From Hyphochytrium catenoides (lineage: Eukaryota; Protista; Hyphochytriomycota), in contig FLMG01004729.1 in the NCBI GenBank assembly GCA_900088475.1, positions 1 through 43,141 on the forward strand: a DNA stretch of 43,141 bases. The letters are read 5' to 3'. The notes beneath the pieces are model-generated. The model had not been told where the DNA came from. It made no database searches and saw only the letters and a program-made list of their open reading frames with translations. Every line of letters starts with the position of its first letter. Positions within the stretch are counted from its first letter, which is position 1. The translations under genes were made by a program, and so were the position numbers. This document shows positions 1 to 36,035 of the stretch, piece after piece.

Positions 1-807
1 GGTGGTAACAGAGTACCTTCTTCCCCCTTACGTCTCTGGCATTGCCGTCGTGAGATTTGACGGCCTTATCCGAGATTTTCGTGCTCTGCTCTGTGAAGGG
101 GACAGATTGCCACTATGTAGGACCATCTATTGTCCAGCCGTTCTATAATGAACAACGAACTTTCTGGATGATTCTCCCTCGGCTATTTTACGAGCTGCTG
201 AACCCTTTCCAGCGTCTTCTTTACGACTTGTTTGTTATATATTGTTCTTCCGCTCTGCCTCCCTTTTGTTTTGCTGCTCTTGCCTCTCTTTTGGTTAAGA
301 GGCATCAAAATCTACTCTTCGCATCACGTTGCCCTGGAGAAGTATGGGAAGGTGTATGATCTTCCAGAATGGTTTCACAACCTAGCCACGTGGACTCATG
401 CTAATGTGCGGTAGTCACGAAAAGTAGCCGACGACGAAAATGTAATCGCGAACGGAAGCTCTGGAAACGAGACTGAGGAAGCCGGCAAGAGAGAAATGGT
501 GCTATGGAACTTCTGATGAAAAGACGGTGACGCAATAATGAAGGAGACTTCTGACCGCCATTCCTCGTATTTGCTGTCTCTGCCTAGCCTCCACCCTCCT
601 TGCGAGACCACTAACGCCTACAGCCGTGCGTAGTATTAAGTATCCATCGCCTTTGGCTGAAAGCCGGTTCCCTTCTACCTCGGATGGGGCGGTCCCGGTC
701 TGAATAGACATGACTGCACCACTGCGAATTGTTGGCCAATCTTAGACGAACTTTGGCCTAGCGCCAACGCGGCCCATGTCTTAGCCGGTCTCAGGCTGCC
801 AATTCTG

Positions 808-1078
808 TGCCTGTACAAGCGACAAGTGTACTCACGCCTGTAGGAAGGACCCTGTGCAAGCGATAAGTGTACTCACGCCGGTATCAAGCGGGCCGTGTCA
901 TAACCTCCCTCAAAGTGCCGGTTCTACGCCTGTACAAGCGACGAGTGTACTCATGTCTTTAGGAAAGACCCTGTGCGGCGACGAGTGTACTCACGCTTTT
1001 AGGACACCCTTGTACACGCGACGAGTGTACTAGCGCTTTTAGGACACCCCTGTACAAGCGACAGTGCACTCACGCCAG
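808..1078. repeat. Imperfect ~41-bp minisatellite (about 6 copies in two blocks)
   Basis: Recurring unit CCTGTACAAGCGACGAGTGTACTCACGC(T/C)TTTAGGACAC at ~809, ~851, ~929, ~970, ~1009 and ~1049. A ~45-bp unrelated stretch separates copies 2 and 3. Confidence 0.85.
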
Positions 1079-1258
1079 TGTTGACTGTTCCTGCTGCGCG
1101 GGATAGGTGCAGTCAGCTGTGTCTAAGTCTGGGCAGGCGGCAGAGGCTGAGGCTGACCGAGCAAATCTGAGACTGAGGCCCGAGGTCAGCCCCATCCTCT
1201 ACCGCGCCAGGAAAACCTAATATCCCCCCCGGATATTCAACCGTCTTGCATTCCAAAC

Positions 1259-1470
1259 AGGCTCGTGGCCAGGGGCTTCACGCAGGTTGAGGGTGTTGAC
1301 TACCAGGAGACCTTCTCGCCTGTATGTAAATTTGCAACCATCAGACTGGTACTGTCGCTTGCTGCCCAGAAGGGACTTAGGCTGAGGGAGATGGATTTCA
1401 AAACTGCCTTTCTCAATGGCGTCCTTAACGAAGAGCTATACATGAAGATGCCAGCTGGTTTTGTGCAGCC
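1259..1470 (+). mobile_element. Ty1/copia LTR-retrotransposon reverse transcriptase (RVT_2) fragment
   Basis: Translation [36 protein letters not shown]...[24 protein letters not shown] matches the canonical copia RT motifs. Similarity stops after PAGF, and no YVDD motif or RNase H follows. Confidence 0.92.
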
Positions 1471-4400
1471 TCTTTCATTCTCTTTCTCTCTGGCTGACCT
1501 TGTTAATATTTTTCCTCGCTCTTTGATGTCCCTGGGCAACGTCATACAGAGGAGAGTGTAGCTTATTGCGGCTGGAATCCTTGTCTCTTTCATCCGGAGG
1601 AGAGTGAGAGAAAACAATGCAAGTGGACTTTGGTGATTCTTGATAGACAAGAGACCGCCTTGCTGGGATGCCTGTGCAGCATGCGCCATTCCCACCGGCA
1701 CTGGAGTACATCATCCGAACAGGTAGTACACCAAATAGATTAGAGTTGTTAGGACCTTTGCCAAGCTATAGGGTGTCAGCCCTAGTCAAGAGCAACACCA
1801 CGAGGAAAAGATTTGAAAGAGATCGCAAGAGGCAGGGATTTGCTGATTTATTTGAAAGAGTGAGTGCTAGTGGATTAGTAGGTGGCAAAAATGGGACAAG
1901 CAAGAACTTCCTAAGAAAGATTAAAAAGAGGCAAGAGCGGAGAGAGGGCAAGGGAGATAGGATCAGGACCTAGGGAAGAGAGACCGAAAAAAACTAGAAG
2001 GGACGGAGGAAAGGAACAGATGAGATGAGAGAGCGGGAGGCGAGAGGTAAGCGAATGGTGAGTTGAAGAGAAAATGAAGATAGTATGACGAAAGAGCGAC
2101 CAAGAGAGCAACAAGGAAGGGATGCAGACACAGAACGGTTGTAGGGCAGAAGCAGAAAGCGTTGGACTTCCCTCTCTCTCTCTCTATTATGGCCAGTAAT
2201 CTCTTTATTCACTATTTCGTTTCCCCCCATTACCTTCTGCTTCTTCTTCTTTACATTTTCTCCCCATAATAAAATAGAGCTTTTCTTACATATATGGACT
2301 TCTCCCTTTCCGGCATCTCTCTCTTTCCTTTTCTTGACCACCAACCGTGGGCTATCGCTTCTTCTCTGAGCATCTTATGCATCTTATCTCTAGATAAGTC
2401 ATTAGATGCTCTACTCTCCCATCACGTATAGCATGTCCTACCATCATGCTCTCTGCATTTCTCTCCCTAATCTCTCTCTGTTACACATTAGCTCTATAGC
2501 TCTTCATCGAGGGTTCATCGTACCAAACGAAAGGGCCTTTTTTCTACCCAGAGTTATCGACGTCATTTGGGGCAACCTCTTCGACGAGATGGGTAGAAAG
2601 TGAGTCAATTAGTTCTAGACGATACGCCGGGAGGACTAGCTATTGATGTACTCATCGCTGCTGGACCTACCACTTTCAACAAGAATTCCTCTATGAACCA
2701 TACGGAGATCCTGCTTAGGGTTATCGGCTTTCCGTCCAAACTCACACGACGGTTCCGTCTTCCCGAAGCTTATCACAGCTAGCCGCCAGCTTGTCAGCTT
2801 GTCTCAGCGTCTCATACTCGTCAAGCCCTGAGCGCTTCCCAAGACACTCAAGGACCCGCAACCTCGGTGCCTGAAGACCGCGAAGCGCCGTCGCCAGCTT
2901 CCTCCTTCCCTCCCTTTTCACTACTTTAGCGGATGGAAAAGAGCGTCAGGAGGAAAAGAAAACGGACCGTCGCACATCACCGGGGGCTAGGAGGAGGACC
3001 ATAATAGTAGACGGTAACGAGCGCCGCTCCTTCTCTCCCTCGCTTTAGTACCTACCATGGTCCTCATTAGCATCTTCCAGATTCAAGCCTGTCTCCCTCG
3101 AATTCGAAACTACTAGACAGTAGCCGTGCCGAGATTTGGATGACTACTGAATGGGAGCCCTCCCGCTAGTCGATTCCTCCCACCGGCGCTGAACCCCAGG
3201 GGAACGATTTTTATCGCTTACATCTGGACGCCTGTACTGTCACAGACGAACTCTCGGGCCTAAACGTAAGAGGAGAACGACGAGCAGTCCTTCAGGCTAA
3301 TCGCTACGACGAGAAGCTTGATGCGAATAAGAAGGGCGGAGTGCTCTGTGCTGGGCCAAAAGACGACTCGAGATATAGTCAAGTGGTGGCGGAGAAGACC
3401 ACTTATTGTGACGGCTTCACCGCGTCCTGTATGCCCTTAGAAGTTCTCCAGGTCAATCTGATCAAGAAATCCACCGATGGCCTGCGCTTCAATGGGCTTG
3501 TCGACAGCAATACCTCGCCTCCGCTGTTTCATAGCGGAACTGAACGGCTTCCGTAGTAGAGAAGGTGAACCAGTTCACCGAGGGCGACAGAATTCTATGC
3601 TTTGGTGTTGTCGCGGGAAAAGAGAGAGAGGACAGCGGCGCCACTACAAGCAGGACAATTGGGGAACAGGTGGGGAACAGTGCCCGCCTGTACGAGCTTG
3701 CTGGGGCTCACGCGGCATCGTGGTCTTCTTCTGGCGATTGCAATTGACTTCAGAAGACTTCAAATGCAACATCCCAGGGCAAAAAGACGTGCTTAGGCTC
3801 TGTTGAACAGGTAAACTTCATTGTGAAGCCGCCTTCCCCATATCACAAGCTAACGGCTCTCTTTTACCGGGTGGCGGCTTTGCCTTTCAGGACCTCAATA
3901 ACGTTTAGCCGAGTACCCCTGCCTACCTGCTCTCGGCTGGGAGGGGCTGCTTGCTAACTCTCAGACGCGGCATATTGTGCACCACCAGAGGACCCGCAAA
4001 CACTCTTTGTGAAGTCAACGAAGTGGTCTGCGCCTTATGCCAACAATCTCCACAAGCATCGACCCAGAATATCATTGGTTTCCTGCCTAACGACAGTACG
4101 CCTTTGTTTTTCAAGTGGAAGAAGTGAATGGTTTGACGGCACGGTCACTAGGCAGGATCACCGTTTTCTTGCCTTATGCTCTCCGAGCGACAAGGCCGTC
4201 ACAGGTAGGCAATAGGATAACTTACTCAGAATACCCTAGCTTCGTCGGGGCCATGTCGTCATGCCTCTTCTCTCGGTCCACTGGATACTTTTGAGCTGAC
4301 AACCGCCACATTTGTAGAAACGGTGCAACGGCGTTTAGATAAACTTCTATGCGGGTCGCTGGGCTTGCCTTGACTCTGTATGCAGCATAGATCTGGTCTA

Positions 4401-6299: not shown

Positions 6300-8180
6300 A
6301 TGGCGAATGCCTCTTCCTTAATAATGATGGGTGGCTGCACAAGAGCTAGGCGCCTCCATTCCGCGATATTGCTATCGGCAGTAGTATCCCTCCTTGTTGC
6401 GTATAGGACAGCTGTTAATGGCCATCATGTCTTTGTTGGACCTCCTGAAAGGATAGTGTCCGCGCTGTCCCCCGCAGAAGTCGAAGAGTCTACCTCTACC
6501 ACTTTCACAGCAGATGGATGGAAACTAGACGCGTCAGTAAAGCAGCAGTTTGACGGTGAAGCTGTGAATACCACTTTTCCCTCTCCAACTCCAGACACTA
6601 CAACGATCCCAGTTACTAGCGAGCCTCCCGCCGTTCTAAACGACTCTGCAGCTGACATTTGGTGGCTTCACTATCCTGCACTTCTAATGGTCATTGTCAG
6701 CTTTATCATATCGCCAATCCTCACGGTCTTGATGTATATAAGGCGTAACACGTACCCATTCGATAAGCTGGAGACCAAGGTCTTAGTTTTTAATGAACTG
6801 ATTATGCCCTGGGCGGTGTGGCAAGGTGCCATTCCTATTGCAGGAGGGGGAGACAACGTCCCTTGTTGGGTGAGCCTCCTCTTCTGGGACATTCCTCTCT
6901 TTCCAACGACGTTCATTATCCTTTACCTGGTGTACAAGCTATGGCTTACTACCCAGTATAACAAGGATATTCTAGAAGGCAAGACGGATTCTTTCGTAGT
7001 CCGGTATCGCATCCTTCTTTCCGGGTACAAGGTCATTGCCCCTGCTGCCTTAGTGAGCTGGGGCTTCACATGGCTTGGAGTCCTCCCTCGGGCTGTGCGT
7101 GTCTTCGACTACTGGAATTACTCTCTACTCAGCAAAGAGTGCAATAACTTTCAGCCACAAGACGTAAGTCACTTGCTCCTAATCAGTTGTCTGACTGCCG
7201 CGCTTGCTCTCCTTCTTCAGTGATGACACATGCTGCTCGTTTAACTGCTTCCCCATTGCTTAACAATGTCAGTTAGTAGTGTCGTCGTAGTCTTCTTCCA
7301 ATTTTCTTCGCGTGTTCCTAGCTTATATTATCTTGTTGATTGATGTCAGGAACCAGTGGACATAACGACGTCTATTTTATTTACTCTTGGGACCGTTATT
7401 GCTGCTCTGGTCTTGCTCCGGAACGTGAAAGATGCCTTCAACATGAAAGATCGCTTTATCAAGGCTAGCATTGCCATTTGCATCAGCTTTGTCTTCGTGG
7501 ACAGCATACCGATCAGCCACCACTACTTCACTGCGCACAGTTTCACCATCATATACGGCATTTCAATCTTTGTCTTCTCGTTTGGCATCCACCTTTTTTC
7601 TTGGTTCATCTCCTTCTCCGCCGTCTGGGCGTCCTATCGTTACGAAAAGGAGAAGACCAATGCACAAATTCTCAAGGTGACGTCACGCATGGCGCAAGTA
7701 GCAGCAGTCGATGAGGAAGCTTCAACTCGTGGTGGCGGGGCTGGTAAAGGTATAAGTCCGATTAAGTCAAAAGATGAGCTTCGGACTGCTCTATTACAGA
7801 ATGGGGAGCTAGTTCAGGTCTTTATGCGCTATCTTGTCCAGGAGCTGTGCGTGGAGAACCTCACTTTCTTGAAGATGTCGGACGAAAAATTTCGAGCTCT
7901 CTCTACTGAAGACGATAGAAAAAATCTGAGCGCCAAAATAGTGGAAAGTTTTATTAGGGATGGAGCGATTATGGAGATCAATATCAGTGCCAAGCTTAAG
8001 AAAGATACAATCGAAAGATACCATGAAACTGGGGGCAAGGAGCGGACATTCTGGGACGAGCTGAATGCGGAGGTCTACGGCTTGCTGATGGATCCATTCA
8101 ATCGCTTTTGCAAGCGCCGCAAAAGGAGGTCTTTCTCTATCGAGGAGGAGAAGGCAGCAATGGCGTCTTCTAAGAGGTAA
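6300..8180 (+). CDS. 7TM-RGS protein (seven-TM domain plus C-terminal regulator of G-protein signalling domain), ~564 aa, 2 exons
   Basis: Exons 6300-7163 and 7350-8180; the phase-0 intron runs GTAAGT...GTCAG. Seven hydrophobic segments with PCW and an ECL2 Cys. RGS box: FMRYLVQELCVENLTFL...AKIVESFIRDGAIMEINIS...EVYGLLMDPFNRF. Confidence 0.88.
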
Positions 8181-9518
8181 GAAAAGCATGATCTAGTAGC
8201 AGCCGAAGTAGTTTCTAGAGTTGCAACGTTGAGATAAAGCAACAAATGTTTCATACTATAGTGAGCCGCCGCGTTAACCCTTTATTCAATTTTTCTAAAA
8301 CGAAGACATCTGCTTCCTTGGTCTGTGTTATAACTCTTTCTAGTCACTCTACCCGGCTTTCATTGGAAGTGGTTTCTTCACGCTTTCGTCTATATTGGAA
8401 GGGCGGCAGCTTTCTTGATTCGATCACTTGTTTTTTTTATACTTCTGCTGCTAAGAGTCGTCGATCTTCACTACCACCAAAGAGATTCTACAACCATCTC
8501 TAGTAGGACATCATGACATCAGCAGCGATTAGTAGTGCACTGAACGTCAACATGAAGAGCTTGATCGTTCTCCGGAGTTGATTTCAAATCTAAGCCATAC
8601 AATAGTTGGACAGAGTGCAGTATTTTACCAAGGAGCAATCATCTATCTGAGGAATGGACTTGGACGACTGAGCTCGAGAGGACAACTAATAAGAGTGATT
8701 CAGCGTTATTGTTATCATCCTTCTTCGTCGGAAGAAGTGGTGGACAGAGGACAGTATACTGCAGGTTGCCCAGCAGCAGGAACCTACGAGGACTGTTGGG
8801 TCTCTCTAAAGCTGAAAATTAAATTAATTAACATCGAAGACATCCTCGGCCTCCCTTCTTTCTTCTTTTTTATAAAATTTGCTATCGACAGATGTACACT
8901 GCTTGACCTTGATGATGAGTGATGATGAACGATACTTGTCATAAATCGTTTCTTCTCGTGCCTCAGACTGAATGTTAGACGCTAACTTGCAGAAAGAACT
9001 ACGGTACTAGTTCCATAAGTAAGGCTTTTATCCATCGCAGTATTTGTGCTGTAAAACTATAGGCAAAGAGCCCACAGAACGAGAAATTGTAATTCGAAGT
9101 ATGTATTTACAATTTATGACCACGAGGTACTTATTTGGATATCTATTTGGACTTGATAAGTAAGTCCTCCAATTTTGCACTTCCAGTCGGTTTTTACCAT
9201 GTCTCAAGGGGTTAACTACCATGCCAGCAAATTGCCCTGTGCAATGTCTGTGCAAGAGATCATCCTGACATCGGCGGCTTTCTCATCCTCCTCGACATAA
9301 ACTTCATTGCTTCTTCTTCCTCGTCATGTATGGTCGGAACTCGTACGAGCAGATCCCAGCTATCGGGACATTGGTGGATGTGTAGAGGTGAGCCCAGTAC
9401 CTCGGAGACCAGCGCTACTCTCCTTGAAGTCCTAGCCATTAAATGCATGAAAGGCCCTGATGAACAGAAGACTTTGGCGAGCCGATTGTCATAGAGAATC
9501 TAGGTGATCGCAGATGGC

Positions 9519-12500
9519 ATGGCTCGCCAGCATGAGACCCTAGAAGGGCTTAGAGTTGATGATGGCCTTAGCCATGGAGGTAGCGTCGTATCACTAGATA
9601 CTGCTTCAATGCAGACCACGCCTCAAGCTATCGGCAGAAAAAGGATCCCAGCCGAATGTGACTTTTCGGAAGTCGCGGAAGCTGTAAGGAGCATTCGTGC
9701 TAGCCAGCAAGAGGGCTGGGCACTATTTGGCTTCAAGGTATGAGACGAATACGCCGAGCGGGACTCTCACTGGCAGACATAAACCTTACATGCTTGTCTT
9801 GCGATTATGTAGAGTGATAGCCCAGCGATGCTTAAAGTGCTGGCTTCTGGCAACGGCAGGCTTCGCGCCGATAGCATACCCTGGGATTCAAACTCGCTAG
9901 GCTATGGACTCTTCTCAGTCTGTCAAAACGACCGCACTTTTGTCATCTCATGCTGCTGGAAAGGGAACTGCCTTCCAGTGTCTGGTCGCCTGAAGCACCA
10001 TGAATATGACAGGAAAATTCAGGTCGATTAAGTGATGTGATCTAGCATCTTAGTAGGCTCATATGGCTTCTGTTACTGCAGCTATATCTTGGCGCTGACC
10101 TCCATCTAGAGCTTACAAGAGCCGAAGATGTAGAGAGGTAAGAACCATGCATACTTGTATCCACGATGTTGCAGGCAACGAGCCTTTTAGAACTTGCACT
10201 ATTCGCGAGCTTCTGGATATCTTTCAACATATGCAAGAATGCTAAACCTTACCCCGCTCATCTCTCAGCTCTCCAAGGATAGCATCTCTCTTTGCACAGA
10301 GGCAGCAGCGCACTGTCGAACGTGCCTGGTTAGGTCAGGCTAAATTCCATGGTGGTGTGGTGGACGCTAAGGAAAAAGTGACTAATTCAACATCTGCAGT
10401 TAATTGGATGGTAAGAAAATAGAACTATCTGTTCGTTTTTAGCTCTACAAACAGTAGAAAGGCGCTTTCCCTCAGCGGCACCTCCGCACGGTCCTAGCTC
10501 CTATTGCAGTGCTGCTGCTTCTTTAACCTTTGTCAATTTAGATTTGTGGTTATGCGAAGGAAGGCGAAACACAGTGCCCTGATGAGCTACTCCTACAAGC
10601 CACTGGAGAGGTAACCAAATGGTCTCTTGACCTTTCTCCTTCTACTGGTTGCCTCTGACTCGCGCTTTTCAGGGCGGTTTGCAAGACCTGCGCTCCATGT
10701 CGGGTCTCATCTGTCAATCGTTACAAATTGGTAGAGTGCAGTATCTGTACATGAAGATAGATATGAGGATAGAGTGGGCTAAGCAGGAGTCCATGTCTAA
10801 ATATGTCTTGGTGACGTGGAGAGTGAGTACAAGCTCGACCCCGGACCTTTGTCTACCTGTGTCCTTGTGTCTTATTTTTCCATCTTATCGCCTTCATGAT
10901 CACTCTGTCACAAACTCACACAATTGCCTGCCTCGCTGAGTTCTGCTAGTACTCCGCCAGTGGGTATTCCAGCTCCCCCAGGGCTTTCTCTAGGACTCAT
11001 TGTGCTTGATCTGACTGTGATGATATATCTCGTGAAATGTCTTTCCAGGGGAAGAGTTCAGGAGCCGACGGCTCATCTGCAGCGCTGCGACTAGGAGCTG
11101 TGACGGCTCATGCAAATGATATATATGCATTTTTTCCTCACCATGTAAGTTAGCTAATTCGCATCTGGAGTGATAGATGGCCATCAAGGACTGGAGACTT
11201 TTCAATTTCCAATTAAAGATAAGTGCGTGAAGCTCATTTGTTCTGCCTTAGGTTCATCTCTCGGTGTCCAGCCTCGAGGAACTTGATGTAGAGGACATAA
11301 GGGAGCGCCTTCGAAGAGCTGTGGACAATGACGCTCTAGTCCTCAGAGTTGTGAGTGCCAAATCTTACTTGTTAGTTAGTTAACACTTCTGAGTGTTTGA
11401 GGCACTCCCCTGCACGACGTTGCCCTCACTTTGCATTGCACTAATATCCTTCGCGTCAAAATGCCACATTCCTCCTTTCCTTGACACTTCTGAAGCTAAA
11501 ATACTGTCTTGGGAACCGCCTGAACACGGCAGGTTCACATATCCGGCGATGGCTACTTCCACTCGCCTTTCGCGGTGGAGTTGGCCAGACAGTCTACTGT
11601 TTCGTCCCTCAGAGAGAGTTTGCAAGCCTACACCGGCATTCCAGAAAACAGGCAACGAATAGTATGGATTAGGACAGACCAGGATGCCCTTGTTAATGGT
11701 ATTGTCTCTCTCTCTCTCTCCACAACTTGTACCCCCGATGCCAGCTTTTTCGGTCTGATTGAGCTAGTGGAGACGAGCTTCGGGTTCGGGCCTTCTTGAA
11801 TCTATACGTTTCCTCTTCCTTATCAGACACAACTGTGAAGCATAAGTATAGCAGCAATCGCTTATACTCTAGAGAAGGGCGGTTGGATTTTGTAGTAGTA
11901 ACCCCTTGTAATGCTTGTCAGGTCAATGGTCTCCTACCCCTCGTTCGCAGGCTGTCTTCCTCTCGGAGGACAAGCGCCTTAGTGATGAGATCGGTCTAGT
12001 ACATGGAGATAAGCTGTATGTGGATGACAGCAACAACGGAGATGACGCACCACTTAGTCAACTCGTACAACAGGTAAAGACATTTAAGATTCTGCTGGCC
12101 CCCGTTACCATACGGGCGTCTCGTCTAGCGTAAAGAGCTGGTTAATGATCAGCGTCTTGCTCTGTAGACCTCAACCGGGAGGTCTATCAGCGCAGCAGCT
12201 ATGAGGAGAGCGGACATCGAGGTGGGAATGGTTTCACGAAGTAAGCAGCTCAGAGAAGCACTTAAAGCTGCCAAGCTACGGCTGAGGAAGACCCAAGATC
12301 ACGGAAAATCTGTAAGAACGCTAAGCTGCACTTATGTTTTTATAAGACTTGACAGGATAGACCCCATTCCCAGCCAAAGACAAGCACTTCTGCTACTCCT
12401 TCCCCGAGAGAAGATACGCAGTCTGCCTCCGCAGTAACTAAAGATCCCTCTTCCGAGATAGAAGAGAGTCCCCTCCCGCTCAACGGATTGGCCGATAAGG

Positions 12501-15279
12501 GAAAGGAGCTTATTCTGAGTAGTGAATACCTAGAGATTGACTATAGCTCTATTCGAATACTGACTGGGAAAGAGGTTAGCCTTTACATTATTTGTCCTTC
12601 TAGCCTTCTTGTGTGTGCGAAGCAACAGTGCCTATCTTCAGCTCCACTCAGATTTTTTTGCTAGCGCATCCAAATCAGCCATTCCCCAACCTGCCCTTCT
12701 CCAGCCTGACGCTGCAGGAGCATTACTAACCCACTTCCATGAGCGTCGTGTATGGCCCAACTAACTTCGATACATCGTGCTTGCAGAATGAGCTTGGAAC
12801 GGGAAAATATGCAACTGTCTACAGGGGATTGTGGTATAACAAGGACTCAGTCTCGGAGGTGAGATTCAAGCTGACCAAGAACGAGACTCTCTACGTGTGC
12901 GGGCTTATATTTTCCAGCTGCAAGTAAAGCTGATATATCGTTGCACCTGTTATCTTAAGCCCTACATGTTGGCCACACTCGACCTACCTTCGGGAAAGAC
13001 TCTTTGCACTGCGTCGTGCAAGATGCTGAAAACTCTGACAAGCACAACGGTCTGTTGCTATGATCTCTTGTAGGTAGCAATTAAGAAGCTGCGCTACAAT
13101 AACCTCACGGATTCTGTGCTGGAAAGCTATCGAGTGGTAAGTACTCCCCGATCGCTTGTATTCCCCTCATTGCCTACACGGGTCATCGATCCAATGCTAC
13201 TTTCAATGCTAAAGTGCCCTCTTAAAACTAGGTTGCCCTCACCTCTAAACATACGATGACTTATTACCTCTACTTACAAATAGGAGGTAGAGATGCTTTC
13301 TCGCCTAAAGCACCCAAATATCATGCTCTTTATCGGTGCTTGTACGAAGCCACGATTGCTGATACTTACGGAGTATTGTTCACACGGAAGGTACTGAGTG
13401 CGATGCAGTAATGAGTGTTTCTAACTGATCGCATTTTGCAAACTTGGCTCGCACTCTGTTGTCCCTGTTTTGTTGTTATTTTTGAAGAACCATTACTTGC
13501 GCCAGAAGCTTCATTGTATGCTTTGCGGTGAACGTCTAGCTCTCCCTGATAATCATGATCCTACTGATTGGCATCTATCCTTTTGTAGCCTTTACAAGGT
13601 GATACAAGACAGGGACGTCTTCTCACAAATCCCATTCATGGTATGTTGGGACGGCGCTTCTCTCAAAATCTTAGAATGTCATCTACGACAGAGAAAAGCT
13701 GCTTAGAAAAGACAAGTGGGTGCGCTAGAGTAACTTTGGGTCGACTGCGAGAAGACTTATGGTAGCTTCACACTTAACCTACTTTTCTACGACTACATTC
13801 AGTATAAACTTCGCATGATGCTGGACGGTGCGAGAGGCATGGAGTACCTTCATTCTGTCAGGGTCATGCATCGAGACATTAAGGTTTGTTATCCAAATTT
13901 GACTTTATATCTGGGTGCCAGTTGGGGGAGGGTGATTGGCTCTTCAAACCCAGACATGCCTAGGACTAACGCCGCACTGAACCGTCCCCCATCGTGTGAT
14001 AGAGCCATAATCTTCTTGTCGATGATGACTGGAGAGTGAAGGTGGCCGACTTCGGTATAAGCAAGGTGATGGCGGCCGAGGAGAGGGCTCATACTCAAGT
14101 TGGGACCACCGGCTGGTAAGGGGGCGCACCGCTCCTAGTCAATCCTATCCTATGTACCTGCCTCTTGCGGCTTTGAACTGACATGAGCTCGCATTAGTAT
14201 CCTTCGGTTCGCCACACCCGCTCGTACTCTGAGACGTCCCTTGTCTAAAAGCTCTCTTACTCGTTACCATTCTTGGAAGGAAGTGTTGATTTACGTCAGT
14301 CAATAACAGCAACCTCTCTATCAACGCCTTCCCCGTACACTAGGGTAGCACCAGAAGTTCTTCTTGATGAGGATGAGGGTTATACGTTTAAAGCTGATAT
14401 CTGGAGGTACAAATGATGGTTCCTGCTGCATTCGCATCGTTCCCCATGGTTTACTTCATGACTAGCGTTATGACTGGCAGTTTACCATTGGAGCCTATCT
14501 TGAACTTCGATGGTGCCGTTCATCTCTCATAACCCATTCTCATTGTCCTCTCTAACTAATCCACTTTATATTTCTGTGCGGTTGCGATCAATACTAATCA
14601 GTTTCGCCATTGTCATGTGGGAGATGGTGGCCGGCGACAATATCAACGAGTTCATTGGGATGGCCCCGGTCAAGTACTATAAACAGCTCATAGAGTTAGG
14701 CAAGAGGCCCCAAATTCCAGATGAGGTCAGTCTTATAAGTAAAGCCGCTCTTCTAGCAATGCTTGTCTACGCTTGTCCTTGGGCCCAATGAACCCGGAAC
14801 CCTAATCTTACGTTGAGCTTCTTTTTCTCGCTGTTGGGGATCGACTAGTCCTGTAGTATCTTATACCTAGTACGGTTATTGCCACACGTGTTGCCTTCCT
14901 GCCTCTAACGCGTGGCGTGCACTTGCAGGTTGATTCAATCTACCGGCAGCTTATTCTCGATTGCTGGCGTTCAGAGCCATGTGAACGGCCATCCTTCTCA
15001 TCTATTGTGCTTCGTCTGGAGAGATTGGGACAGGACTTGGGGCTGGATATCTCTTTGCCTCCAACTTGGCGAAGTGGTGTGCGAAAGACAGAAAGCGATG
15101 TTGACGCAGCCCTTTGGAGGCTCTCAGAGAACTTGAATGGTGTGGGTCCCCTAATCACCTCACACGCTGCTTCATTGGTTTCTCTCTCTCCGTCGTCTAG
15201 TCAGCCCCCCTTACCAGCCTCAAAAGCATCGCTGCCCGTTGAGAGGTACCTCACCTTTCCACCTCCACCGCCATCGTAG
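9519..15279 (+). CDS. Multidomain TKL-group (Raf/MLK-like) protein kinase with N-terminal tandem ADF-H domains, ubiquitin-like domain and WH2-like motif, ~915 aa, 21 exons
   Basis: Phase-consistent GT-AG exons: 9519-9737, 9813-10022, 10082-10137, 10269-10410, 10542-10610, 10673-10822, 11049-11144, 11252-11350, 11533-11698, 11922-12073, 12168-12311, 12356-12574, 12787-12858, 13074-13136, 13284-13390, 13589-13640, 13803-13883, 14003-14115, 14344-14406, 14602-14725, 14929-15279 (2748 nt, open throughout). Kinase motifs: [65 protein letters not shown]. The start codon and last exon are less certain. Confidence 0.85.
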
Positions 15280-16399
15280 CGGCAGGCATTATGGTCGCTT
15301 TACCAAACGGATACGACTTCTTCATGGGCTCGTAGCCCTTCCTACGGCTGATGGGGCTTCTTTTATTGCTACGGCAACACGTGGATACCTGTTACCCAAA
15401 TCAGGCCCTACTGCCTGCAGCTTATTATGGCGCCATCATCAGCTACTATAAATAGCTCAGCTTAACGAGCTCACTTGTCCAGCCGGGTATCGGTGACCGG
15501 AGGTACGCAAGGACGCAGTTCTACGAGAGGATAGGATTCAGCGACAGGCCCCAATCTCCTGAACACCTACGGTTTCCACGGACGCACTACTTATGACTCT
15601 AGCCTCGTTGGACTTCCAACCGACGTTTGCAAATCCCAAAGCTTTTGCATAACACCCTGCAGGGAAGGCCATTCAATAGTCCATGGCTCAATGCCTCTTG
15701 GACTTTATGAACGCTCCCCTGAGTGATTGTTTCGAAGTCGTTTTCAGCATATTCAGTCTACCCCATGTTATAGACTATGATAGGCACCTTGTACACCTCT
15801 TTTCCTTTGCTTGCTGAACCGTTGTAGGGTTAGAACCGAACACAGGGTAGAGATGGCCGTGAAACAGAGAAGCATGTAAATGTACCCTATCAGAGAAGTG
15901 ACTTTGACCACACTAAATAGAAGAAATGAAAGGCGTGCGCGAAGGGAAGGGTCAGGCAGCATACGGTCATCCGCCAGGTAGGGACTGCAGCCGACATAGG
16001 GACTGCAGCCGACAAGGGCAAGGGGGCCGGAAAATTTGGAGACCACCATATGTTTAGCCTCGAGGGTGTGTCAGCTGAGCAGAAGCAAAAAAATCGGATC
16101 GCACCATACCTCAGCGGGGAGAAGACGAAGACACTACAAGTTCCCGGGTGTGGATCTTGAAGGGAAAAAGCAGGGATTGGTTGAGTGCTCAGAGGCAGGA
16201 GCACAAGAAGGCGAGGTCACGACGTCCGTCTTAAGGAAGACCCATTCTAGAAAGGTACGATAGACATCTGATGCATGGGCATAATAGTAGCAGAGCCATA
16301 AAGCACAGAGTCGGGCATCTAGGGAGCTTTGACTGGTTGAGTGGATCTGCTTCCTGAATAGAAGGCAACTCCTTTACTGAGCTGACTGATGAGGAAGAT

Positions 16400-24600: not shown

Positions 24601-25536
24601 TTACCAGGCAAGTCCATAGGAAACCTCATCCGAGTCGGAAGAGTAATACTCCACATCTTCGTATATCTGGGACAGCTGTGGCCTCGAATAGTGGTGTGGC
24701 ACGGTCCTAGCACCACGTAGCAACATAGACGTGCTCTGCTCGGCAGGAAAGTAGGCGGTGGTGTCCTTGGGCCTGGTCCAATGCGCGCGACAATACATAT
24801 TGCACTGGTGCCGAGCAAAGAAAGAGCTAATTCCTTCGGGGCCCAGGTCCGTGACGCCATACATACGTGTCCGAGAGAGCACAACCGGGTCCGTTAGCAC
24901 CACGCCGTTGCGATAAATCCCACCCTGGAGATCACAGACAACAAAATGACCTCCGCTGGCATGGTAAGAGAAATGACTGAGTGCTTGCATCGCTTTGACC
25001 CATGATGGGCCCTTCCGGTGGGATGGCACCCAGCCTGAGTTTGAGTTAAACTTGACATAATCTTCTATGAATGGCTCCACCAGGACCTTCTGACCGTGTC
25101 TAGGACCGCCGTCACTAATTGTCCATACCTGGGGCTGGTTAATCCGAACTTGTTGGTTGACGATATTCTCGCTGTTCCACCGTCGTACCAGGTCAGTGGC
25201 GCGTTCCATTGCCTTGAGATCCGACTCATAGAACTCCGCCTCATACACGACTCCGGATTTGAACCACTTGCCCACGCACGGCTGCCCTGCTCTCTGACCG
25301 CCATTATAGATACCCTTTGCTACCCAGCGGAACCGCCCTTCGGCGAAGGGGCGGTCCATATCATGGATAAGTGCACGCGTGGCGTTATTGACCCTCGACG
25401 AAGTGTCATAGCCAGGCTGATATCCGTCCTCGACACAAAAGCGGCACCGCGATATCCCTGCTCCCTTACGCCATTGGTTATAACTGAAGTCTTCGTGGTC
25501 CAAAGACTGAGAACAAGCAGCACAGTGGCGTTGCAT
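24601..25536 (-). CDS. Alpha-kinase (eEF2K/MHCK family) with N-terminal Cys4 zinc finger, 311 aa, intronless
   Basis: Alpha-kinase motifs PFAEGRFR, CVGKWFK, VEPFIEDYVKFNSNSGW, QALSHFSYHASGG, VCDLQG, LTDP, DLGPEGISSFFARHQCNMYC. N-terminal CAAC...FSYNQW...CRFC. Confidence 0.93.
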   Translation of the reverse strand: MQRHCAACSQSLDHEDFSYNQWRKGAGISRCRFCVEDGYQPGYDTSSRVNNATRALIHDMDRPFAEGRFRWVAKGIYNGGQRAGQPCVGKWFKSGVVYEAEFYESDLKAMERATDLVRRWNSENIVNQQVRINQPQVWTISDGGPRHGQKVLVEPFIEDYVKFNSNSGWVPSHRKGPSWVKAMQALSHFSYHASGGHFVVCDLQGGIYRNGVVLTDPVVLSRTRMYGVTDLGPEGISSFFARHQCNMYCRAHWTRPKDTTAYFPAEQSTSMLLRGARTVPHHYSRPQLSQIYEDVEYYSSDSDEVSYGLAW

Positions 25537-30719: not shown

Positions 30720-30779
30720 CTCCTTCAGTACCGGTCGCTGCGTTGAAAAGGCCACGCTTTGGAGGTTGTGGTTCTAGAG

Positions 30780-33700
30780 ATGAAGGCTAAGGTCATTGCT
30801 TGTGATTCACACTGGAGTAACCCCATCATATCTGGCACGAACGGCAGCGCCACCGAAGATGAACAGCAAAGTAGTAGCGGGCCTGCCGGGGGTCAGAAGT
30901 CATCGGCATGCAACCTTGGTAGCTCTCCCAAGAATGCAGCACGAGCTGTCGAGCCCAGGACAACGAAGAAGGAGGCTGGAGAGCCGTCTTCTCTTGAGTG
31001 CAAAAATCAGGGACACGCAGCATACTTTAGCGCTGAGGTCCCTCCGATGGCCCAAGGCAATGACACTCGCAATCACAGTGGAGAAGCATTGCCAAGCAAA
31101 GAGGTTAAATGCCAAGGGCGCAAAGTGTCTGCAATAGAGGGACTCTCGACCTTCCATCGAGATGGAAGACCCACTCAGAAGCCGATCGGGGTGTACATGG
31201 CAAATATACGGCTCTGCCACAGGTTCATCGAGGTACTCAGTGCTCTTCAACAGCACCAGAAAGCAGGAATCGTCACGAAGCGGGAGGGACAGAAAGAAGG
31301 TGATTCTTTGGACAACAGGGAGCAACAGGACTATCGGGCCAGTGTCATCGACACTTACCTTCAACGCATCGAGAGTCAGATTGTTCAGATAGCACAGACT
31401 ACATGTCGTGTCTCACTCGCGTCAGCGGCTCCACCATCGTCTCGTAGTGAGTCATTGGAGACTAGCCGCTCCACCTGGGGTGCTAAGGCCCTATCGACAA
31501 AGTCTCTGTTCGTTAGAAAGGTAGACGGAGACGGCGGGGGTTGGAGAGGAGCAGGAAGACCTTCTGCTTCCCCAAAGAACATGCAGGCACGGCGCATCAA
31601 CGTGTCCAAACATCAGCGGGTCTCTCCCCAGTCATCTTTCGCAACAGACAATAACCCTGGCGCGGAAGATGCATCCATTGCTAGCACTTTACCATTGTCA
31701 TCCTCCGCATCATCAGGGTCGTCGCAACGGGGTCGTTCTAGCTCAACCCTCTCTCTTCCTCTCCGAGGCGTGGTCAGTATAAAATTGAAGCTGAAGCAAC
31801 GCCAAGAGACCTTAAGAAGTCTCTTTACCGTTTCCAGAACGCGACAAGCGCGCAGGCTTCGCTTTCTGTTAGCTCGGAAGCCATATGTGGAGCTTGGGGC
31901 AGAGCAAAGCCATCTTTCTCTAATGCATAAGCTCCTAGGCCAGAGCTTCACGCACACGTGGTGGAGAGCCAAGGCGATAACAGCTCCTGCAGCGTGGCTG
32001 GCGTTCGTCTTTGCAATATGCGCTTTGCCCCTTACCCTGATACTCGGACCTGCCATCACTGACACGGCCAAGTTGACCACAGGCTTGCTATGCGTCGCTG
32101 CGGGTCTTTACTGTGGGATATTCTCCACGTCGCTCATGAATTACCGCCTTCTTTGTATGATGCTTAGCACCTTCGACCTCCTTTTCCTCTTCACGGAGAT
32201 GTTTCTGTACGTTGGCTCGCTGGTCATCGTGCTCTGCGGTGCGCCCATCGGATACTGCGCCGCTATCTCCATAGCTTTTGGCTACTTCTTTACCATTGTA
32301 TACGACTGCTTTCCGCTCTCCATACGGAAGAAGTGTAGGGCTGGATTGCTGGTGGCATGTATCTGGAACTTTCTTCTTTGGCTTATCCTCTATACGCAGC
32401 CTCCTGAAGGACTATGTAGGTACCACGTGAACATGAGGACAGGTCAATTGACAGATGAGCATTACGATGGCTGGAAGTTCTCCCTCTTTGACTTCTGCCT
32501 GAACCGAGGGCTTAACATCGTCATCCTCTTCACAAAGATGACGTGCATGACCTTTAAATATCCCACTGACTGTGTGGTGCTCAAGTCACGTCTTCGCCTT
32601 ATGGAGTGTGAGGTGGCGAACCGTACGCCGTATGAAGATGACTTGAGCAGCACGTCATCTGGAGGACGGACAGGAGAAGGTAGCAGTGATGGACTAACGG
32701 GCCCCATCGGCAGGGTGAAAGGGGAGGATGGGGAAGAGGAAGAGGAGAAGGAAAGAGGAAGTCAAAAGGAAAGAAGAAAGTGTTCCACGACGGCGCTCTG
32801 TGACTCCATGCTAGCATATCTTTCGACGTCCACTACCTTTCACGACCACGAGTGGAAGTGCATCGTTGACGTCTATCTGCTCCTGTCTGAAATGCGCAAA
32901 GGTACCACCAGGCTGAAAGATGCTACTAAGGCACCTCCACTGGCCCCATCTTCTACTGTCCTTTCTCCTGTTACTTCTCTATCTTCGTCGACGCCAGGCG
33001 ACGGTGAGATTCCTGAACTTTCATCGGGAGAGAGGCCCTCAAGTGGTGACGAAGCAACCATGATAGGATCCCATCAACGCAGTGGCCGCTTCGTTTTCTT
33101 GGCCCAACTTGGGAGAGGAGGACATGAGGGCCATTTCTCTGCTTCCAGGAGGACAAAAGGCAAGTACGCGCTGACAGTGGTAAAGCTGCATTCCGAAATG
33201 ACAGAACAGGAGAGCGGACAAACAGTCATGATGCTCCTCTTCGGACAAAAGTTTACGGAGGTCTGGTTTCAATGGCGCAGACTTCTAACTCCGTTAGCCC
33301 GGCTCTCCTTCGTGACCTATATGGCCATGGCGCTAGTGCTGATTATGAATGCTGGTTCGCCATCCACTGAAGCGCTCATGGGCTCCTTGCTTCTGCTGAA
33401 TTCTCTCATTATGATGATCTTCTACTCCTCGCTCATGAACTACTGGATCTTTCGGTGCTGTCTAAGAATGTTTGACGTGGCATTTTTCATGGTCCACTTG
33501 CTGGTCTACTCCTTCTTTCTTGCTAGCGCTCTCTGCTTTACCCCAGGGGGCTGGTGTCTTGGCATCAGTTGGTTCTTGGCTAATGCCATTACTTTCTTCT
33601 ACGACTCCATGCCTCTACGAACAAGAAACAAGAGCAAAGGAGTTGCCTTTCTGGGAACGGTCTTTGTGATAGTAGTGGAGTTGCTCTACTATACACGACT

Positions 33701-33983
33701 ACCGCCAGGCTTATGTACCTACCGTGTCGGGATGTCTGACGACGGGAATGTTTGGCTGAGGGACAACGAACTGCATCAAGGTTTATCAGTCTTTGAAGCT
33801 GGCCTCAACAGCGGACTGACGTTAATCGTCCTGCTGTCCAGAATCTGCTTTGCGGTCATCAATGATCCTGAGGATTGCGTCGTGCTCCGAACTCGGATGC
33901 GTCTGATTGCTGTGCCTGACTTTACTGCCATGGCCCCACTAGATTTTCTGCCAGCGGTCCAACCAACTCAACATCCACAATGA
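30780..33983 (+). CDS. Uncharacterised polytopic membrane protein with two internal 6-TM repeats (paralog A), ~1067 aa, intronless
   Basis: Long ORF, first in-frame ATG at 30780. Two hydrophobic blocks share the motifs SLMNY..FD..F, YDC/S.PL..R.K, PP.GLC.Y and P.DCVVL.SRLRL. Collinear with 36036-38996. Confidence 0.85.
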   Translation: MKAKVIACDSHWSNPIISGTNGSATEDEQQSSSGPAGGQKSSACNLGSSPKNAARAVEPRTTKKEAGEPSSLECKNQGHAAYFSAEVPPMAQGNDTRNHSGEALPSKEVKCQGRKVSAIEGLSTFHRDGRPTQKPIGVYMANIRLCHRFIEVLSALQQHQKAGIVTKREGQKEGDSLDNREQQDYRASVIDTYLQRIESQIVQIAQTTCRVSLASAAPPSSRSESLETSRSTWGAKALSTKSLFVRKVDGDGGGWRGAGRPSASPKNMQARRINVSKHQRVSPQSSFATDNNPGAEDASIASTLPLSSSASSGSSQRGRSSSTLSLPLRGVVSIKLKLKQRQETLRSLFTVSRTRQARRLRFLLARKPYVELGAEQSHLSLMHKLLGQSFTHTWWRAKAITAPAAWLAFVFAICALPLTLILGPAITDTAKLTTGLLCVAAGLYCGIFSTSLMNYRLLCMMLSTFDLLFLFTEMFLYVGSLVIVLCGAPIGYCAAISIAFGYFFTIVYDCFPLSIRKKCRAGLLVACIWNFLLWLILYTQPPEGLCRYHVNMRTGQLTDEHYDGWKFSLFDFCLNRGLNIVILFTKMTCMTFKYPTDCVVLKSRLRLMECEVANRTPYEDDLSSTSSGGRTGEGSSDGLTGPIGRVKGEDGEEEEEKERGSQKERRKCSTTALCDSMLAYLSTSTTFHDHEWKCIVDVYLLLSEMRKGTTRLKDATKAPPLAPSSTVLSPVTSLSSSTPGDGEIPELSSGERPSSGDEATMIGSHQRSGRFVFLAQLGRGGHEGHFSASRRTKGKYALTVVKLHSEMTEQESGQTVMMLLFGQKFTEVWFQWRRLLTPLARLSFVTYMAMALVLIMNAGSPSTEALMGSLLLLNSLIMMIFYSSLMNYWIFRCCLRMFDVAFFMVHLLVYSFFLASALCFTPGGWCLGISWFLANAITFFYDSMPLRTRNKSKGVAFLGTVFVIVVELLYYTRLPPGLCTYRVGMSDDGNVWLRDNELHQGLSVFEAGLNSGLTLIVLLSRICFAVINDPEDCVVLRTRMRLIAVPDFTAMAPLDFLPAVQPTQHPQ

Positions 33984-36035
33984 AGCCAACACAGCCTATT
34001 TCCTTCTCTTACTGAGCTTGAAGAAGCTCCCCACTCTCTCCAGTAAGCAGGACTTTGTCATCATAACTAGGGGTCTCAAGGGTCCTTCTTAGTGCACATA
34101 GTAACTCTTATTCTCTATATACTTGCCTGGACAGGGCCTCATCGACATCAGAACGAGCCATCAGCTAAACTCCTCACAACTGTCCCTTTAACTTCGGAGC
34201 TACCACGAGCCCTCTAAGCTATCGGTCATCTACGGAGTGACCACGAGACCTTTCAGCCAAAGTGATGACGATGCCATTGAGAGGTCACAGAAGGTTAACA
34301 ACTGCTGCTGAATGATGATGCTCATGCATTAGCAGTATTGCTTTTTCCTTCTTGGCTAGTGTTCGCAGCATGTCTCCTCCCTTGGGCATTAGTTAGGTAA
34401 AATAGTAAGCTTTGCTTTCCCCTTCACCGCTGAGATACAAGTCGTCGCTAGGTAATGGGTTCCACATCAGCACGACGTATTGACATGGCAAACCTGCTAT
34501 AACGCCCTCCACCCGATGGCGCGCCGCTCGGGCCCAGAAGGCTTCGCTAGCAGATTAGGTGGTATGTGCTGGTGATGAGCAGGCTAGTTCTCTCACTCAC
34601 CACCATGATGCCATTCTCCTGCTCCTCTTCAAACCAGGACGAGGGGCCACTTAGAGTGTCACGCCATGGGCTGGTTATGTCAGTGACGACAACTCCAGTC
34701 GCCTTACCTTGACAGAAGCTTCGGTGGCTGCCCGCACGCCAGAAGAAGTTCAAACAAAGAAAGTCGTCCGCTGAGGATTGTTCAGTAGGACCATTAAGCA
34801 GTATGACCGACGCAGCAGCCCGCAAGTCGAGCGCGGGCTGCTATGCCACTCTGCGCCCTTGAGAGAGAGCATCAGACAGAAGAGAAGAAGAGGCAGCCCT
34901 GGCTGTCAGAGCAAGACGCTGGAGCTGGGAACCAGATCAAAAGTCCATCATTTATGGGTAGGAGATGGACACCTTGCAGTACTAAATGTTAGGAAAGGGA
35001 GACTGCAGTAACGGCCGTGTCACCGTCCGTTACACGCGCGCTGGTGATGATTTCCTAAGCCTGTCATTATCTTAGCGGCAGAGATGCTGCCTCAGAGCGC
35101 ACGCGTGAGAAAGAGAGGGACAGTCCCGCGCCCTTAATGTTAGGGCTTGAGCAGTCTAGTGGTCAGAGCCCTGTCACGGCAGGTCGAACGTAGCAGGCAA
35201 CTGCCTGCCTGGATGCTCCTCTGGTTGGCGCGGAAAGAAGATGGCGTGATAAATAAGTGCATGCCATCGACTCGGTAAGGCAACAAGAAGCTTGTTCACA
35301 GCTTCTCATGGCACATCATAGCTCGTCACTTTCAGAATGAAGCAGCGTTCTGAGGAGTGCTCTCCTCTTCCAATGGGGTGGTGGATAGTACGCCCATCAA
35401 CGGGTAGAACGCGGCTGATCGCTATCTCGTAACGCTGAAGCGCTTACCATTATCATCAAGCAAGCCGCAGACATAAGAAGAGTCAGGTGGCAGCGTAGAA
35501 CGAGGTGAACAGAGGGATAACGACTGAGGTTTGACCTCCTTCCTGGTGGTACGTGGCAGCTAAAATGCTCGGATCGGTGTTGACCGATGCTGAGAGGATG
35601 CCAGCAGCAAGAAGCTTAAATTCCCGAGTGATACCTCTGCTGTCCCCGCTATGCCAGCAGGTCAACCCTCCTCCTGCCGCTTGTTGACTGGAGTCGGTGT
35701 CCATCCTTTCTCGCTGTACCTCCAAGGATGGGGCACGAAGGGATCCCGCTGATAGCGATATGCTTTACCTCTGGAAGATAGGTCTTGGCAGGAGATAATC
35801 GCGACGAGGAAAGCGACTAGCAGCTACCGTTGTCTCTCCTTTGCTTAGCTCAAAGCTGCCGTTTAGCACTGGCTCTACCGCGCCATATGATAGAGGCAAG
35901 TATGGCATGACCCTAGTCCGCCCTCAGCTAGTCCATCATGGTGTAGACTAAGGATATGCCTCCATAAAGCAGTGGCCGCCTTTCGCGCAGCAGGAGAAGA
36001 AGACTTCGGTGCATTGCAATCGCTTCTCAGTTACT

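Follow-up and report, generated by a model that had tools for sequence, protein, structure and literature searches.

Does a single protist gene join the actin-binding modules of an adaptor to a protein kinase in one polypeptide, and what might such a protein do? The question is raised by a locus at positions 9519-15279 of a 43,141-nucleotide (nt) stretch of Hyphochytrium catenoides DNA (assembly GCA_900088475.1, contig FLMG01004729.1, forward strand, positions 1 to 43,141; 'the window' in what follows), where the initial annotation, made without database searches, had proposed a hidden gene of 21 exons and about 915 amino acids (aa) for two ADF-H domains, a ubiquitin-like domain, a WH2-like motif and a TKL kinase. 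The analysis presented here leads us to consider it fairly probable that one gene encodes an ADF-H/ADF-H/ubiquitin-like/TKL kinase protein which is tethered to actin through its second ADF-H domain.

A split gene under purifying selection

The gene model was obtained by picking exons from the sequence and joining open frames in phase across GT..AG introns, which gives 21 exons on the forward strand and a coding sequence of 2748 nt (915 aa plus stop). The introns, all of them GT..AG, range from 44 to 228 nt in length (median 154), the exons account for 48% of the gene span, and the list of open reading frames (ORFs) for positions 9000-16000 contains nothing but fragments at the gene. Intron 11 is 44 nt long and has an alternative in-frame acceptor 18 nt downstream (at 12373, as compared with 12355). 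All of the peptides quoted in the initial annotation are found within the spliced translation, including four that run across exon junctions (NWM/ICGY, TGE/GGL, TWR/G and HH/VHL, with the slash at the junction). An automated splice model, in which dynamic programming maximised the open frame, returned 28 over-extended exons and was dropped.

Four DNA runs were compared with positions 9450-15350 of the window and showed no joints there, the runs found being from the same organism together with two environmental ones. Although exons occupy nearly half of the span, only 9 of the 40 listed substitutions are exonic (binomial p=0.0009), and eight of these nine are synonymous in the proposed frame, the remaining one being a Q>K replacement. 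All four indels are intronic, three substitutions fall inside the 44-nt intron 11, and the same variant pattern is seen in soil-metagenome contigs that are 95-99% alike. In addition, codon-usage log-odds trained on the intronless ORFs of the window total +118 bits in frame, as opposed to -237 and -412 bits out of frame; every exon but one is positive (20 of 21), and the introns lie near or below zero. The distribution of the variants, their synonymy and the codon log-odds show that the exons encode protein and that purifying selection acts on the gene, and the hidden 21-exon gene of the initial annotation is upheld.

To the extent that DNA evidence can tell, both the gene and its domain architecture are genuine. 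A decaying or unexpressed gene, whose in-phase reading would be a relic, could be proposed instead, but it is barely credible in view of the absence of any stop codon or frameshift in all 21 exons, of the nearly complete synonymy of the exonic variants and the confinement of indels to introns (also against the soil-metagenome relatives), and of catalytic residues that are all intact (see below).

The assembler word depth over positions 9450-15350 was about 33 in run X1 (83 million letters) and about 350-400 in run X3 (101 million letters), far above what runs of this small size should yield if the genome measures tens of megabases. Possible causes are amplified DNA, a pooled-clone library or a depth artefact.

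One clear and one likely ADF-H domain

For the assignment of the N-terminal domains, a training set was assembled by scanning metagenome contigs for DNA encoding the pattern K-[FY]-[VA]-[LF]-[IVM]-x-W-x-G-E, a motif of drebrin, DBNL and COTL1. The scan produced 112 loci, most of them with real ADF-H ORFs; when source ORFs were checked against Pfam, 19 of 19 matched PF00241 above threshold (mostly at 78-258 bits), many of them also carrying an SH3 domain, as in Abp1. Motif scans of viral contigs gave chance matches only. Twelve of the fetched ADF-H domains were used to build a profile (A1) and 35 to build a local hidden Markov model (HMM), which was run against the spliced protein. Searched against the PDB, profile A1 ranks drebrin-like protein, coactosin-like protein, Entamoeba coactosin, drebrin and yeast Abp1 above the cofilins.

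Domain 2 scores 61.5 bits with the HMM (E=3.7e-21, for one target), with contributions from its N-terminal half (26 bits alone) and its C-terminal half (30 bits alone), and the best of 3000 shuffled versions reaches 10.0 bits. Its global hhalign probability is 99.1%, and its best pairwise BLASTP alignment has 29% identity over 153 aa (E=1e-19). Reversed sequences score about 0, and so do the other parts of the protein. Domain 2 is thus strongly supported as a genuine ADF-H domain of the class that the initial annotation had named (drebrin/Abp1/coactosin), whose members bind the side of actin filaments. Domain 1 is a weaker case, with 22.0 bits overall and 20.7 for the N-terminal half alone, 19.6 bits with the retrieval motif masked, 5.7 bits for the best of 3000 shuffles, a global hhalign probability of 91.5% over 124 columns and a best BLASTP alignment of 21% identity over 135 aa (E=1e-5); exon 2 alone, compared with A1, gives a weak match (E=0.055) in the expected register. 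Of the proposal of a first ADF-H domain, the homology stands as likely, but the C-terminal half is insignificant by itself, and the domain is divergent and probably degenerate. There is no significant similarity between domains 1 and 2, and therefore a recent internal duplication is unsupported.

Several observations weigh against an actin-binding ADF-H pair. Searches with single exons found no ADF-H domain in Pfam, in the PDB (exons 2 and 6), in the ESM atlas (exons 6 and 2) or in a representative library (exon 2). The C-terminal half of domain 1, where by the usual ADF-H layout we would expect the main actin-contacting helix, scores -0.5 bits alone, at about the 95th percentile of shuffles and thus not significantly. 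Domain 2 has four insertions, and the Glu of its W-x-G-E motif is replaced by Lys; the Lys of its KYVLVTW strand would correspond to Lys75 of coactosin. Furthermore, domain 2 shares in part the motif with which the training set was retrieved, but even with that motif masked it scores 43.3 bits.

LIMK and TESK are TKL kinases that have ADF-H proteins as substrates, and an ADF-H domain in the same chain as a TKL kinase might have a role other than actin binding. More specifically, both ADF-H domains could have lost actin binding and be regulatory or docking modules that act within the protein or between proteins. In one form of this explanation, the kinase would possibly treat them as a substrate-like partner in its own chain, much as the LIM and TES kinases recognise the folded ADF-H domain of cofilin. 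The degenerate C-terminal half of domain 1, the insertions and lost Glu of domain 2, and the presence of the LIMK1-cofilin complex (5HVK) among the PDB matches of A1 would all fit such a role. We nevertheless regard it as unlikely, since domain 2 is conserved along its full length and falls in the class that binds the filament side and not in the cofilin class, and since LIM kinases are absent among the 60 best solved-structure matches of kinase exon 15.

A word-index search with exon 6 returned no candidate, and a first scan of the metagenome contigs with exon 2 as protein returned nothing. AlphaFold2 applied to exon 2 alone was uninformative (predicted local distance difference test score, pLDDT, of 43.9). 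Among 1.84 billion representatives, exon 2 matched only two bacterial BspA-type leucine-rich-repeat proteins, by a chance motif that occurs in 4-7 repeats in each, and these were rejected. Such leucine-rich-repeat matches of exon 2 (9813-10022) are a chance likeness inflated by repetition, and a caution for automated annotation.

Tandem arrays were also met among the fetched ORFs, at least 15 of which have two or three tandem coactosin-class ADF-H domains, so that arrays of this kind are not unusual in protists. In L008, L012, L017, L031, L046, L064, L073, L076 and others, all from metatranscriptomes, ORFs of 300-560 aa consist solely of two or three tandem ADF-H domains (PF00241). This protein type is distinct from twinfilin, and domain 1 is closest to the domains of such proteins.

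The predicted ubiquitin-like domain and the linkers

Exon 9 encodes half a domain and matches PF00240 with 23.5 bits (E=4.6e-5), just below the cut-off of 25.4 bits, aligning to ubiquitin residues 14-46 in exact register. In exon 10 the expected pattern resumes after an insertion, with a weak match to UN_NPL4 at the end of a ubiquitin-like profile (E=0.13). A ubiquitin-like domain across exons 9-10, as originally suggested, is moderately supported by these alignments. The WH2-like motif did not survive: the candidate, LRLRKT, lies wholly within exon 11, which makes an exon-level Pfam scan a fair test for it, and the scan of this exon at E<=10 is empty. No SH3 family was found by Pfam in any exon, whereas the fetched Abp1-like ORFs show SH3 clearly. 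A Ser/Thr/Pro-rich linker of about 120 aa separates the ubiquitin-like domain from the kinase domain.

The kinase domain

Exons 13, 15, 17, 18, 19 and 21 match positions 6-24, 51-86, 104-128, 131-161, 164-181 and 234-257 of the Pfam kinase profile, in this order, and some of the kinase exons score higher on PK_Tyr_Ser-Thr than on Pkinase. The set of catalytic motifs is complete, comprising the G-loop, VAIK, the helix-C Glu, HRDIK, SHNLL (with its Asn), DFG and APE. Among solved structures, exon 15 comes closest to CTR1 (E=4e-7), B-Raf and DLK, and exon 18 to EGFR, RIPK2 and FERONIA; exon 20 had no matches in the PDB search. All of this points to an intact, active kinase of TKL type, and the corresponding claim of the initial annotation holds in the form 'TKL-like', on the strength of the colinear Pfam matches, the motifs and the likeness of exon 15 to CTR1, B-Raf and DLK.

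One gene or two, and a second locus

Two metagenome contigs, L033 (Ga0209935_1019839, 1-3918) and L085 (Ga0209914_1013770, 1-3458), overlap by 2086 nt without a mismatch and carry what looks like a second, differently built ADF-H-kinase gene. An ADF-H domain spread over three exons (PF00241, 27.9 bits) is followed by a 2.3-kb spacer that two open frames cover (367 and 417 codons, charged and with RD repeats). Kinase exons of TKL type (Pkinase, 41.9 bits) come next on the same strand and continue past the end of the contig. The likeness to the H. catenoides gene lies in the order, with ADF-H exons upstream of TKL-type kinase exons on one strand of an intron-containing eukaryotic gene. There are differences as well, namely a single ADF-H domain, the long charged RD-repeat linker, no detected ubiquitin-like domain, and a kinase that is 32% identical over 96 aa. 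The fusion on these contigs may be an independent one.

This second locus bears on the question of whether the H. catenoides gene has been misjoined from two neighbours. In the DNA-based model all 21 exons are inferred to lie on one mRNA, and the sole plausible gene break is at the link between exons 10 and 11. If the exon 10 donor were read through, an ADF-H/ADF-H/ubiquitin-like gene could end at TAA 12131-12133, and a separate kinase gene could begin at ATG 12201; indeed, there is an in-frame ATG in exon 11, and with the intron retained a stop follows 19 codons past the exon 10 donor. Such an arrangement is nonetheless quite improbable. A 3' end, a promoter and a 5' end would have to fit into about 67 nt. 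Intron 10 has ordinary ends (GTAAAG..TAG) and its removal keeps the phase without a stop. In the joined frame, exon 12 and the stretch of exon 11 that precedes the ATG both have coding scores, and in the independent contig the ADF-H and kinase exons are bridged by continuous open frames.

Comparison with known families

The closest likeness of the ADF-H part is to the class of Abp1, drebrin-like protein (DBNL, HIP-55), drebrin and coactosin: the profile that domain 2 matches, and domain 1 to a lesser degree, has as its top PDB matches drebrin-like protein (1X67), coactosin-like protein (1WNJ/1T2L), drebrin (5Y1Z) and yeast Abp1 (1HQZ). The protein described here differs from this class in that no SH3 domain was found, in having the kinase in the same chain, in having two ADF-H domains (the first of them degenerate), and in its predicted ubiquitin-like domain.

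Twinfilin has two cofilin-like ADF-H domains, a tail that binds capping protein and no kinase or other further domain, and was once misnamed A6 protein tyrosine kinase. It shares with the protein in question the N-terminal tandem of ADF-H domains, but is set apart, by description, by the drebrin/Abp1/coactosin-class match and by the predicted ubiquitin-like domain and true kinase that follow the ADF-H pair; the two- and three-domain coactosin-class proteins of metatranscriptome contigs are nearer tandem relatives. On the kinase side, the HRDIKSHNLL loop, the DFG and APE motifs and the matches of exon 15 recall Raf/CTR1/MLK-type TKL kinases and the multi-domain TKL kinases of protists. The searches detected neither a Ras-binding or C1 region nor a leucine zipper or EDR1 region in the present protein, whose accessory domains are ADF-H domains and a predicted ubiquitin-like one. 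Finally, the LIM and TES kinases are another case in which a TKL-group kinase is connected with an ADF-H domain, but there the ADF-H protein is a separate, cofilin-class substrate, and the present protein is without LIM or PDZ domains.

Full-text literature searches found no description of an ADF-H-kinase family. In their main texts, the kinome papers on Phytophthora infestans (PMC3019232) and Dictyostelium (PMC1420674) do not mention an ADF/cofilin domain. In a Schistosoma kinome paper (PMC3117856), a figure legend includes Cofilin_ADF, without comment, in its list of domains that accompany kinases; the supplements of that paper, like those of the Hyphochytrium genome paper (PMC5795050), have no entry for 'Cofilin', 'ADF' or 'PF00241'. 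The initial annotation had not recognised the architecture as a described family, which agrees with the literature searches; the bare combination of ADF-H and kinase, however, is probably not unique, because it occurs on the L033/L085 contigs and in the Schistosoma listing. The protein combines known kinds, the multi-domain protist TKL kinases and the Abp1-class actin adaptors, and is interesting without being startling.

Proposed function

Abp1-class adaptors bring kinases to actin non-covalently, through their SH3 domains. This is the case for Ark1/Prk1 in yeast (PMC2150571), for PakB, recruited by an Abp1-type adaptor in Dictyostelium (PMC3708727), and for HPK1, recruited by mammalian HIP-55 (PMC11404759). 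In the H. catenoides protein, the adaptor module and the kinase would form one polypeptide, without SH3. Domain 2 would bind the side of the actin filament, as drebrin, Abp1 and coactosin do, so that the kinase would be kept close to actin-rich structures and could phosphorylate cytoskeletal or membrane-traffic proteins in their vicinity. The degenerate domain 1 and the ubiquitin-like domain would most likely be regulatory or protein-docking modules, although this is speculative. By analogy with these adaptor-kinase pairs, an actin-tethered kinase appears to be the most likely function, with an internal regulatory ADF-H pair as the main rival.

Feature coordinates and neighbouring genes

Table 1. 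Exons and predicted domains of the ADF-H-kinase gene (positions in the window)
Feature	Position	Strand	Content	Evidence or remark
Coding region	9519..15279	+	21 exons, 915 codons and TAG stop	In-phase model, variants, codon log-odds
Exon 1 (aa 1-73)	9519..9737	+	Non-domain N-terminus, then start of ADF-H domain 1 (WALFGF strand)	
Exon 2 (aa 74-143)	9813..10022	+	ADF-H domain 1, core	Searched alone: no Pfam, PDB or ESM atlas match
Exon 3 (aa 144-162)	10082..10137	+	ADF-H domain 1, end	
Exon 4 (aa 162-209)	10269..10410	+	Inter-domain segment, first helix/strand of ADF-H domain 2	Variant 10314 synonymous
Exon 5 (aa 210-232)	10542..10610	+	ADF-H domain 2	
Exon 6 (aa 233-282)	10673..10822	+	ADF-H domain 2, core (GGL..QY..KYVLVTW)	
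Exon 7 (aa 283-314)	11049..11144	+	ADF-H domain 2, long helix region	
Exon 8 (aa 315-347)	11252..11350	+	ADF-H domain 2, C-terminal strand and helix	
Exon 9 (aa 348-403)	11533..11698	+	Predicted ubiquitin-like domain, first half	PF00240 E=4.6e-5; variant 11565 synonymous
Exon 10 (aa 403-453)	11922..12073	+	Predicted ubiquitin-like domain, second half, with insertion of about 15 aa	Weak UN_NPL4, E=0.13; sequence reading
Exon 11 (aa 454-501)	12168..12311	+	Linker; holds LRLRKT at 12276-12293	No Pfam family at E<=10
Exon 12 (aa 502-574)	12356..12574	+	Ser/Thr/Pro-rich linker into kinase start	Alternative acceptor 12373
Exon 13 (aa 575-598)	12787..12858	+	Kinase glycine loop GTGKYATV	Pfam kinase profile
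Exon 14 (aa 599-619)	13074..13136	+	VAIK lysine	Variant 13124 synonymous
Exon 15 (aa 620-655)	13284..13390	+	Helix C glutamate to hinge	PF07714 E=3.5e-6; CTR1, B-Raf, DLK
Exon 16 (aa 655-672)	13589..13640	+		Variant 13626 = Q>K, the sole non-synonymous one
Exon 17 (aa 673-699)	13803..13883	+	HRDIK catalytic loop	
Exon 18 (aa 700-737)	14003..14115	+	SHNLL, DFG, activation segment	Three variants, all synonymous
Exon 19 (aa 737-758)	14344..14406	+	W-VAPE	
Exon 20 (aa 758-799)	14602..14725	+	Helices F-G region	Highest codon log-odds among exons
Exon 21 (aa 800-915)	14929..15279	+	Kinase end (CW..RPSF), Ser/Pro-rich tail, TAG stop	
ADF-H domain 1 (aligned aa 42-116, envelope to aa 162)	9642..10269	+	Likely ADF-H, divergent	22.0 bits, hhalign 91.5%
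ADF-H domain 2 (aa 190-337)	10351..11320	+	Drebrin/Abp1/coactosin class	61.5 bits, hhalign 99.1%
Protein kinase domain (about aa 565-832)	12545..15027	+	TKL-like kinase	Colinear Pfam matches, all catalytic motifs

Just upstream of the gene, at 6300-8180 on the forward strand, two long open frames were read by eye as a multi-pass membrane protein that ends in an RGS-like box (LVQELCVENLTFL), possibly a seven-transmembrane receptor with RGS domain. Downstream, at 24601-25536 on the reverse strand, an intronless ORF encodes a 311-aa alpha-kinase (PF02816) that is rich in Cys near its N-terminus. The best matches to it in the protein database are only 50-57% identical and come from fungi, diatoms, a raphidophyte, a cryptophyte, Balamuthia and an oomycete, with no self-match; as exon 2 had no relative either, the proteins of this genome seem to be absent from the protein collections searched. 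A pair of paralogous ORFs without introns, of 1074 and 995 aa, occupies positions 30759-33983 and 36009-38996 of the forward strand, so that intron density differs sharply between neighbours, from these paralogues to the gene with its 20 introns.

Implications

The gene is invisible both to ORF tracks and to exon-by-exon domain searches, and therefore protist kinomes derived from such data probably under-count accessory domains. It is conceivable, though we hold the idea only tentatively and with some doubt, that the protein is the founding and best-resolved member of an undescribed protist family in which an Abp1/coactosin-type ADF-H module is joined to a TKL kinase and filament binding localises or gates the kinase, with the L033/L085 gene as a second member. 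If this were true, nature would have united in one 'Rosetta-stone' fusion the kinds of adaptor and kinase that pair as Abp1-Ark1/Prk1 in yeast, Abp1-PakB in Dictyostelium and HIP-55-HPK1 in mammals. Should the ADF-H module bind filaments, actin structures would be linked to phosphorylation within a single chain, the protein would offer a compact construct for asking whether filament binding turns the kinase on, and the gene fusion would show that Abp1-class modules and kinases cooperate outside animals, fungi and amoebae.

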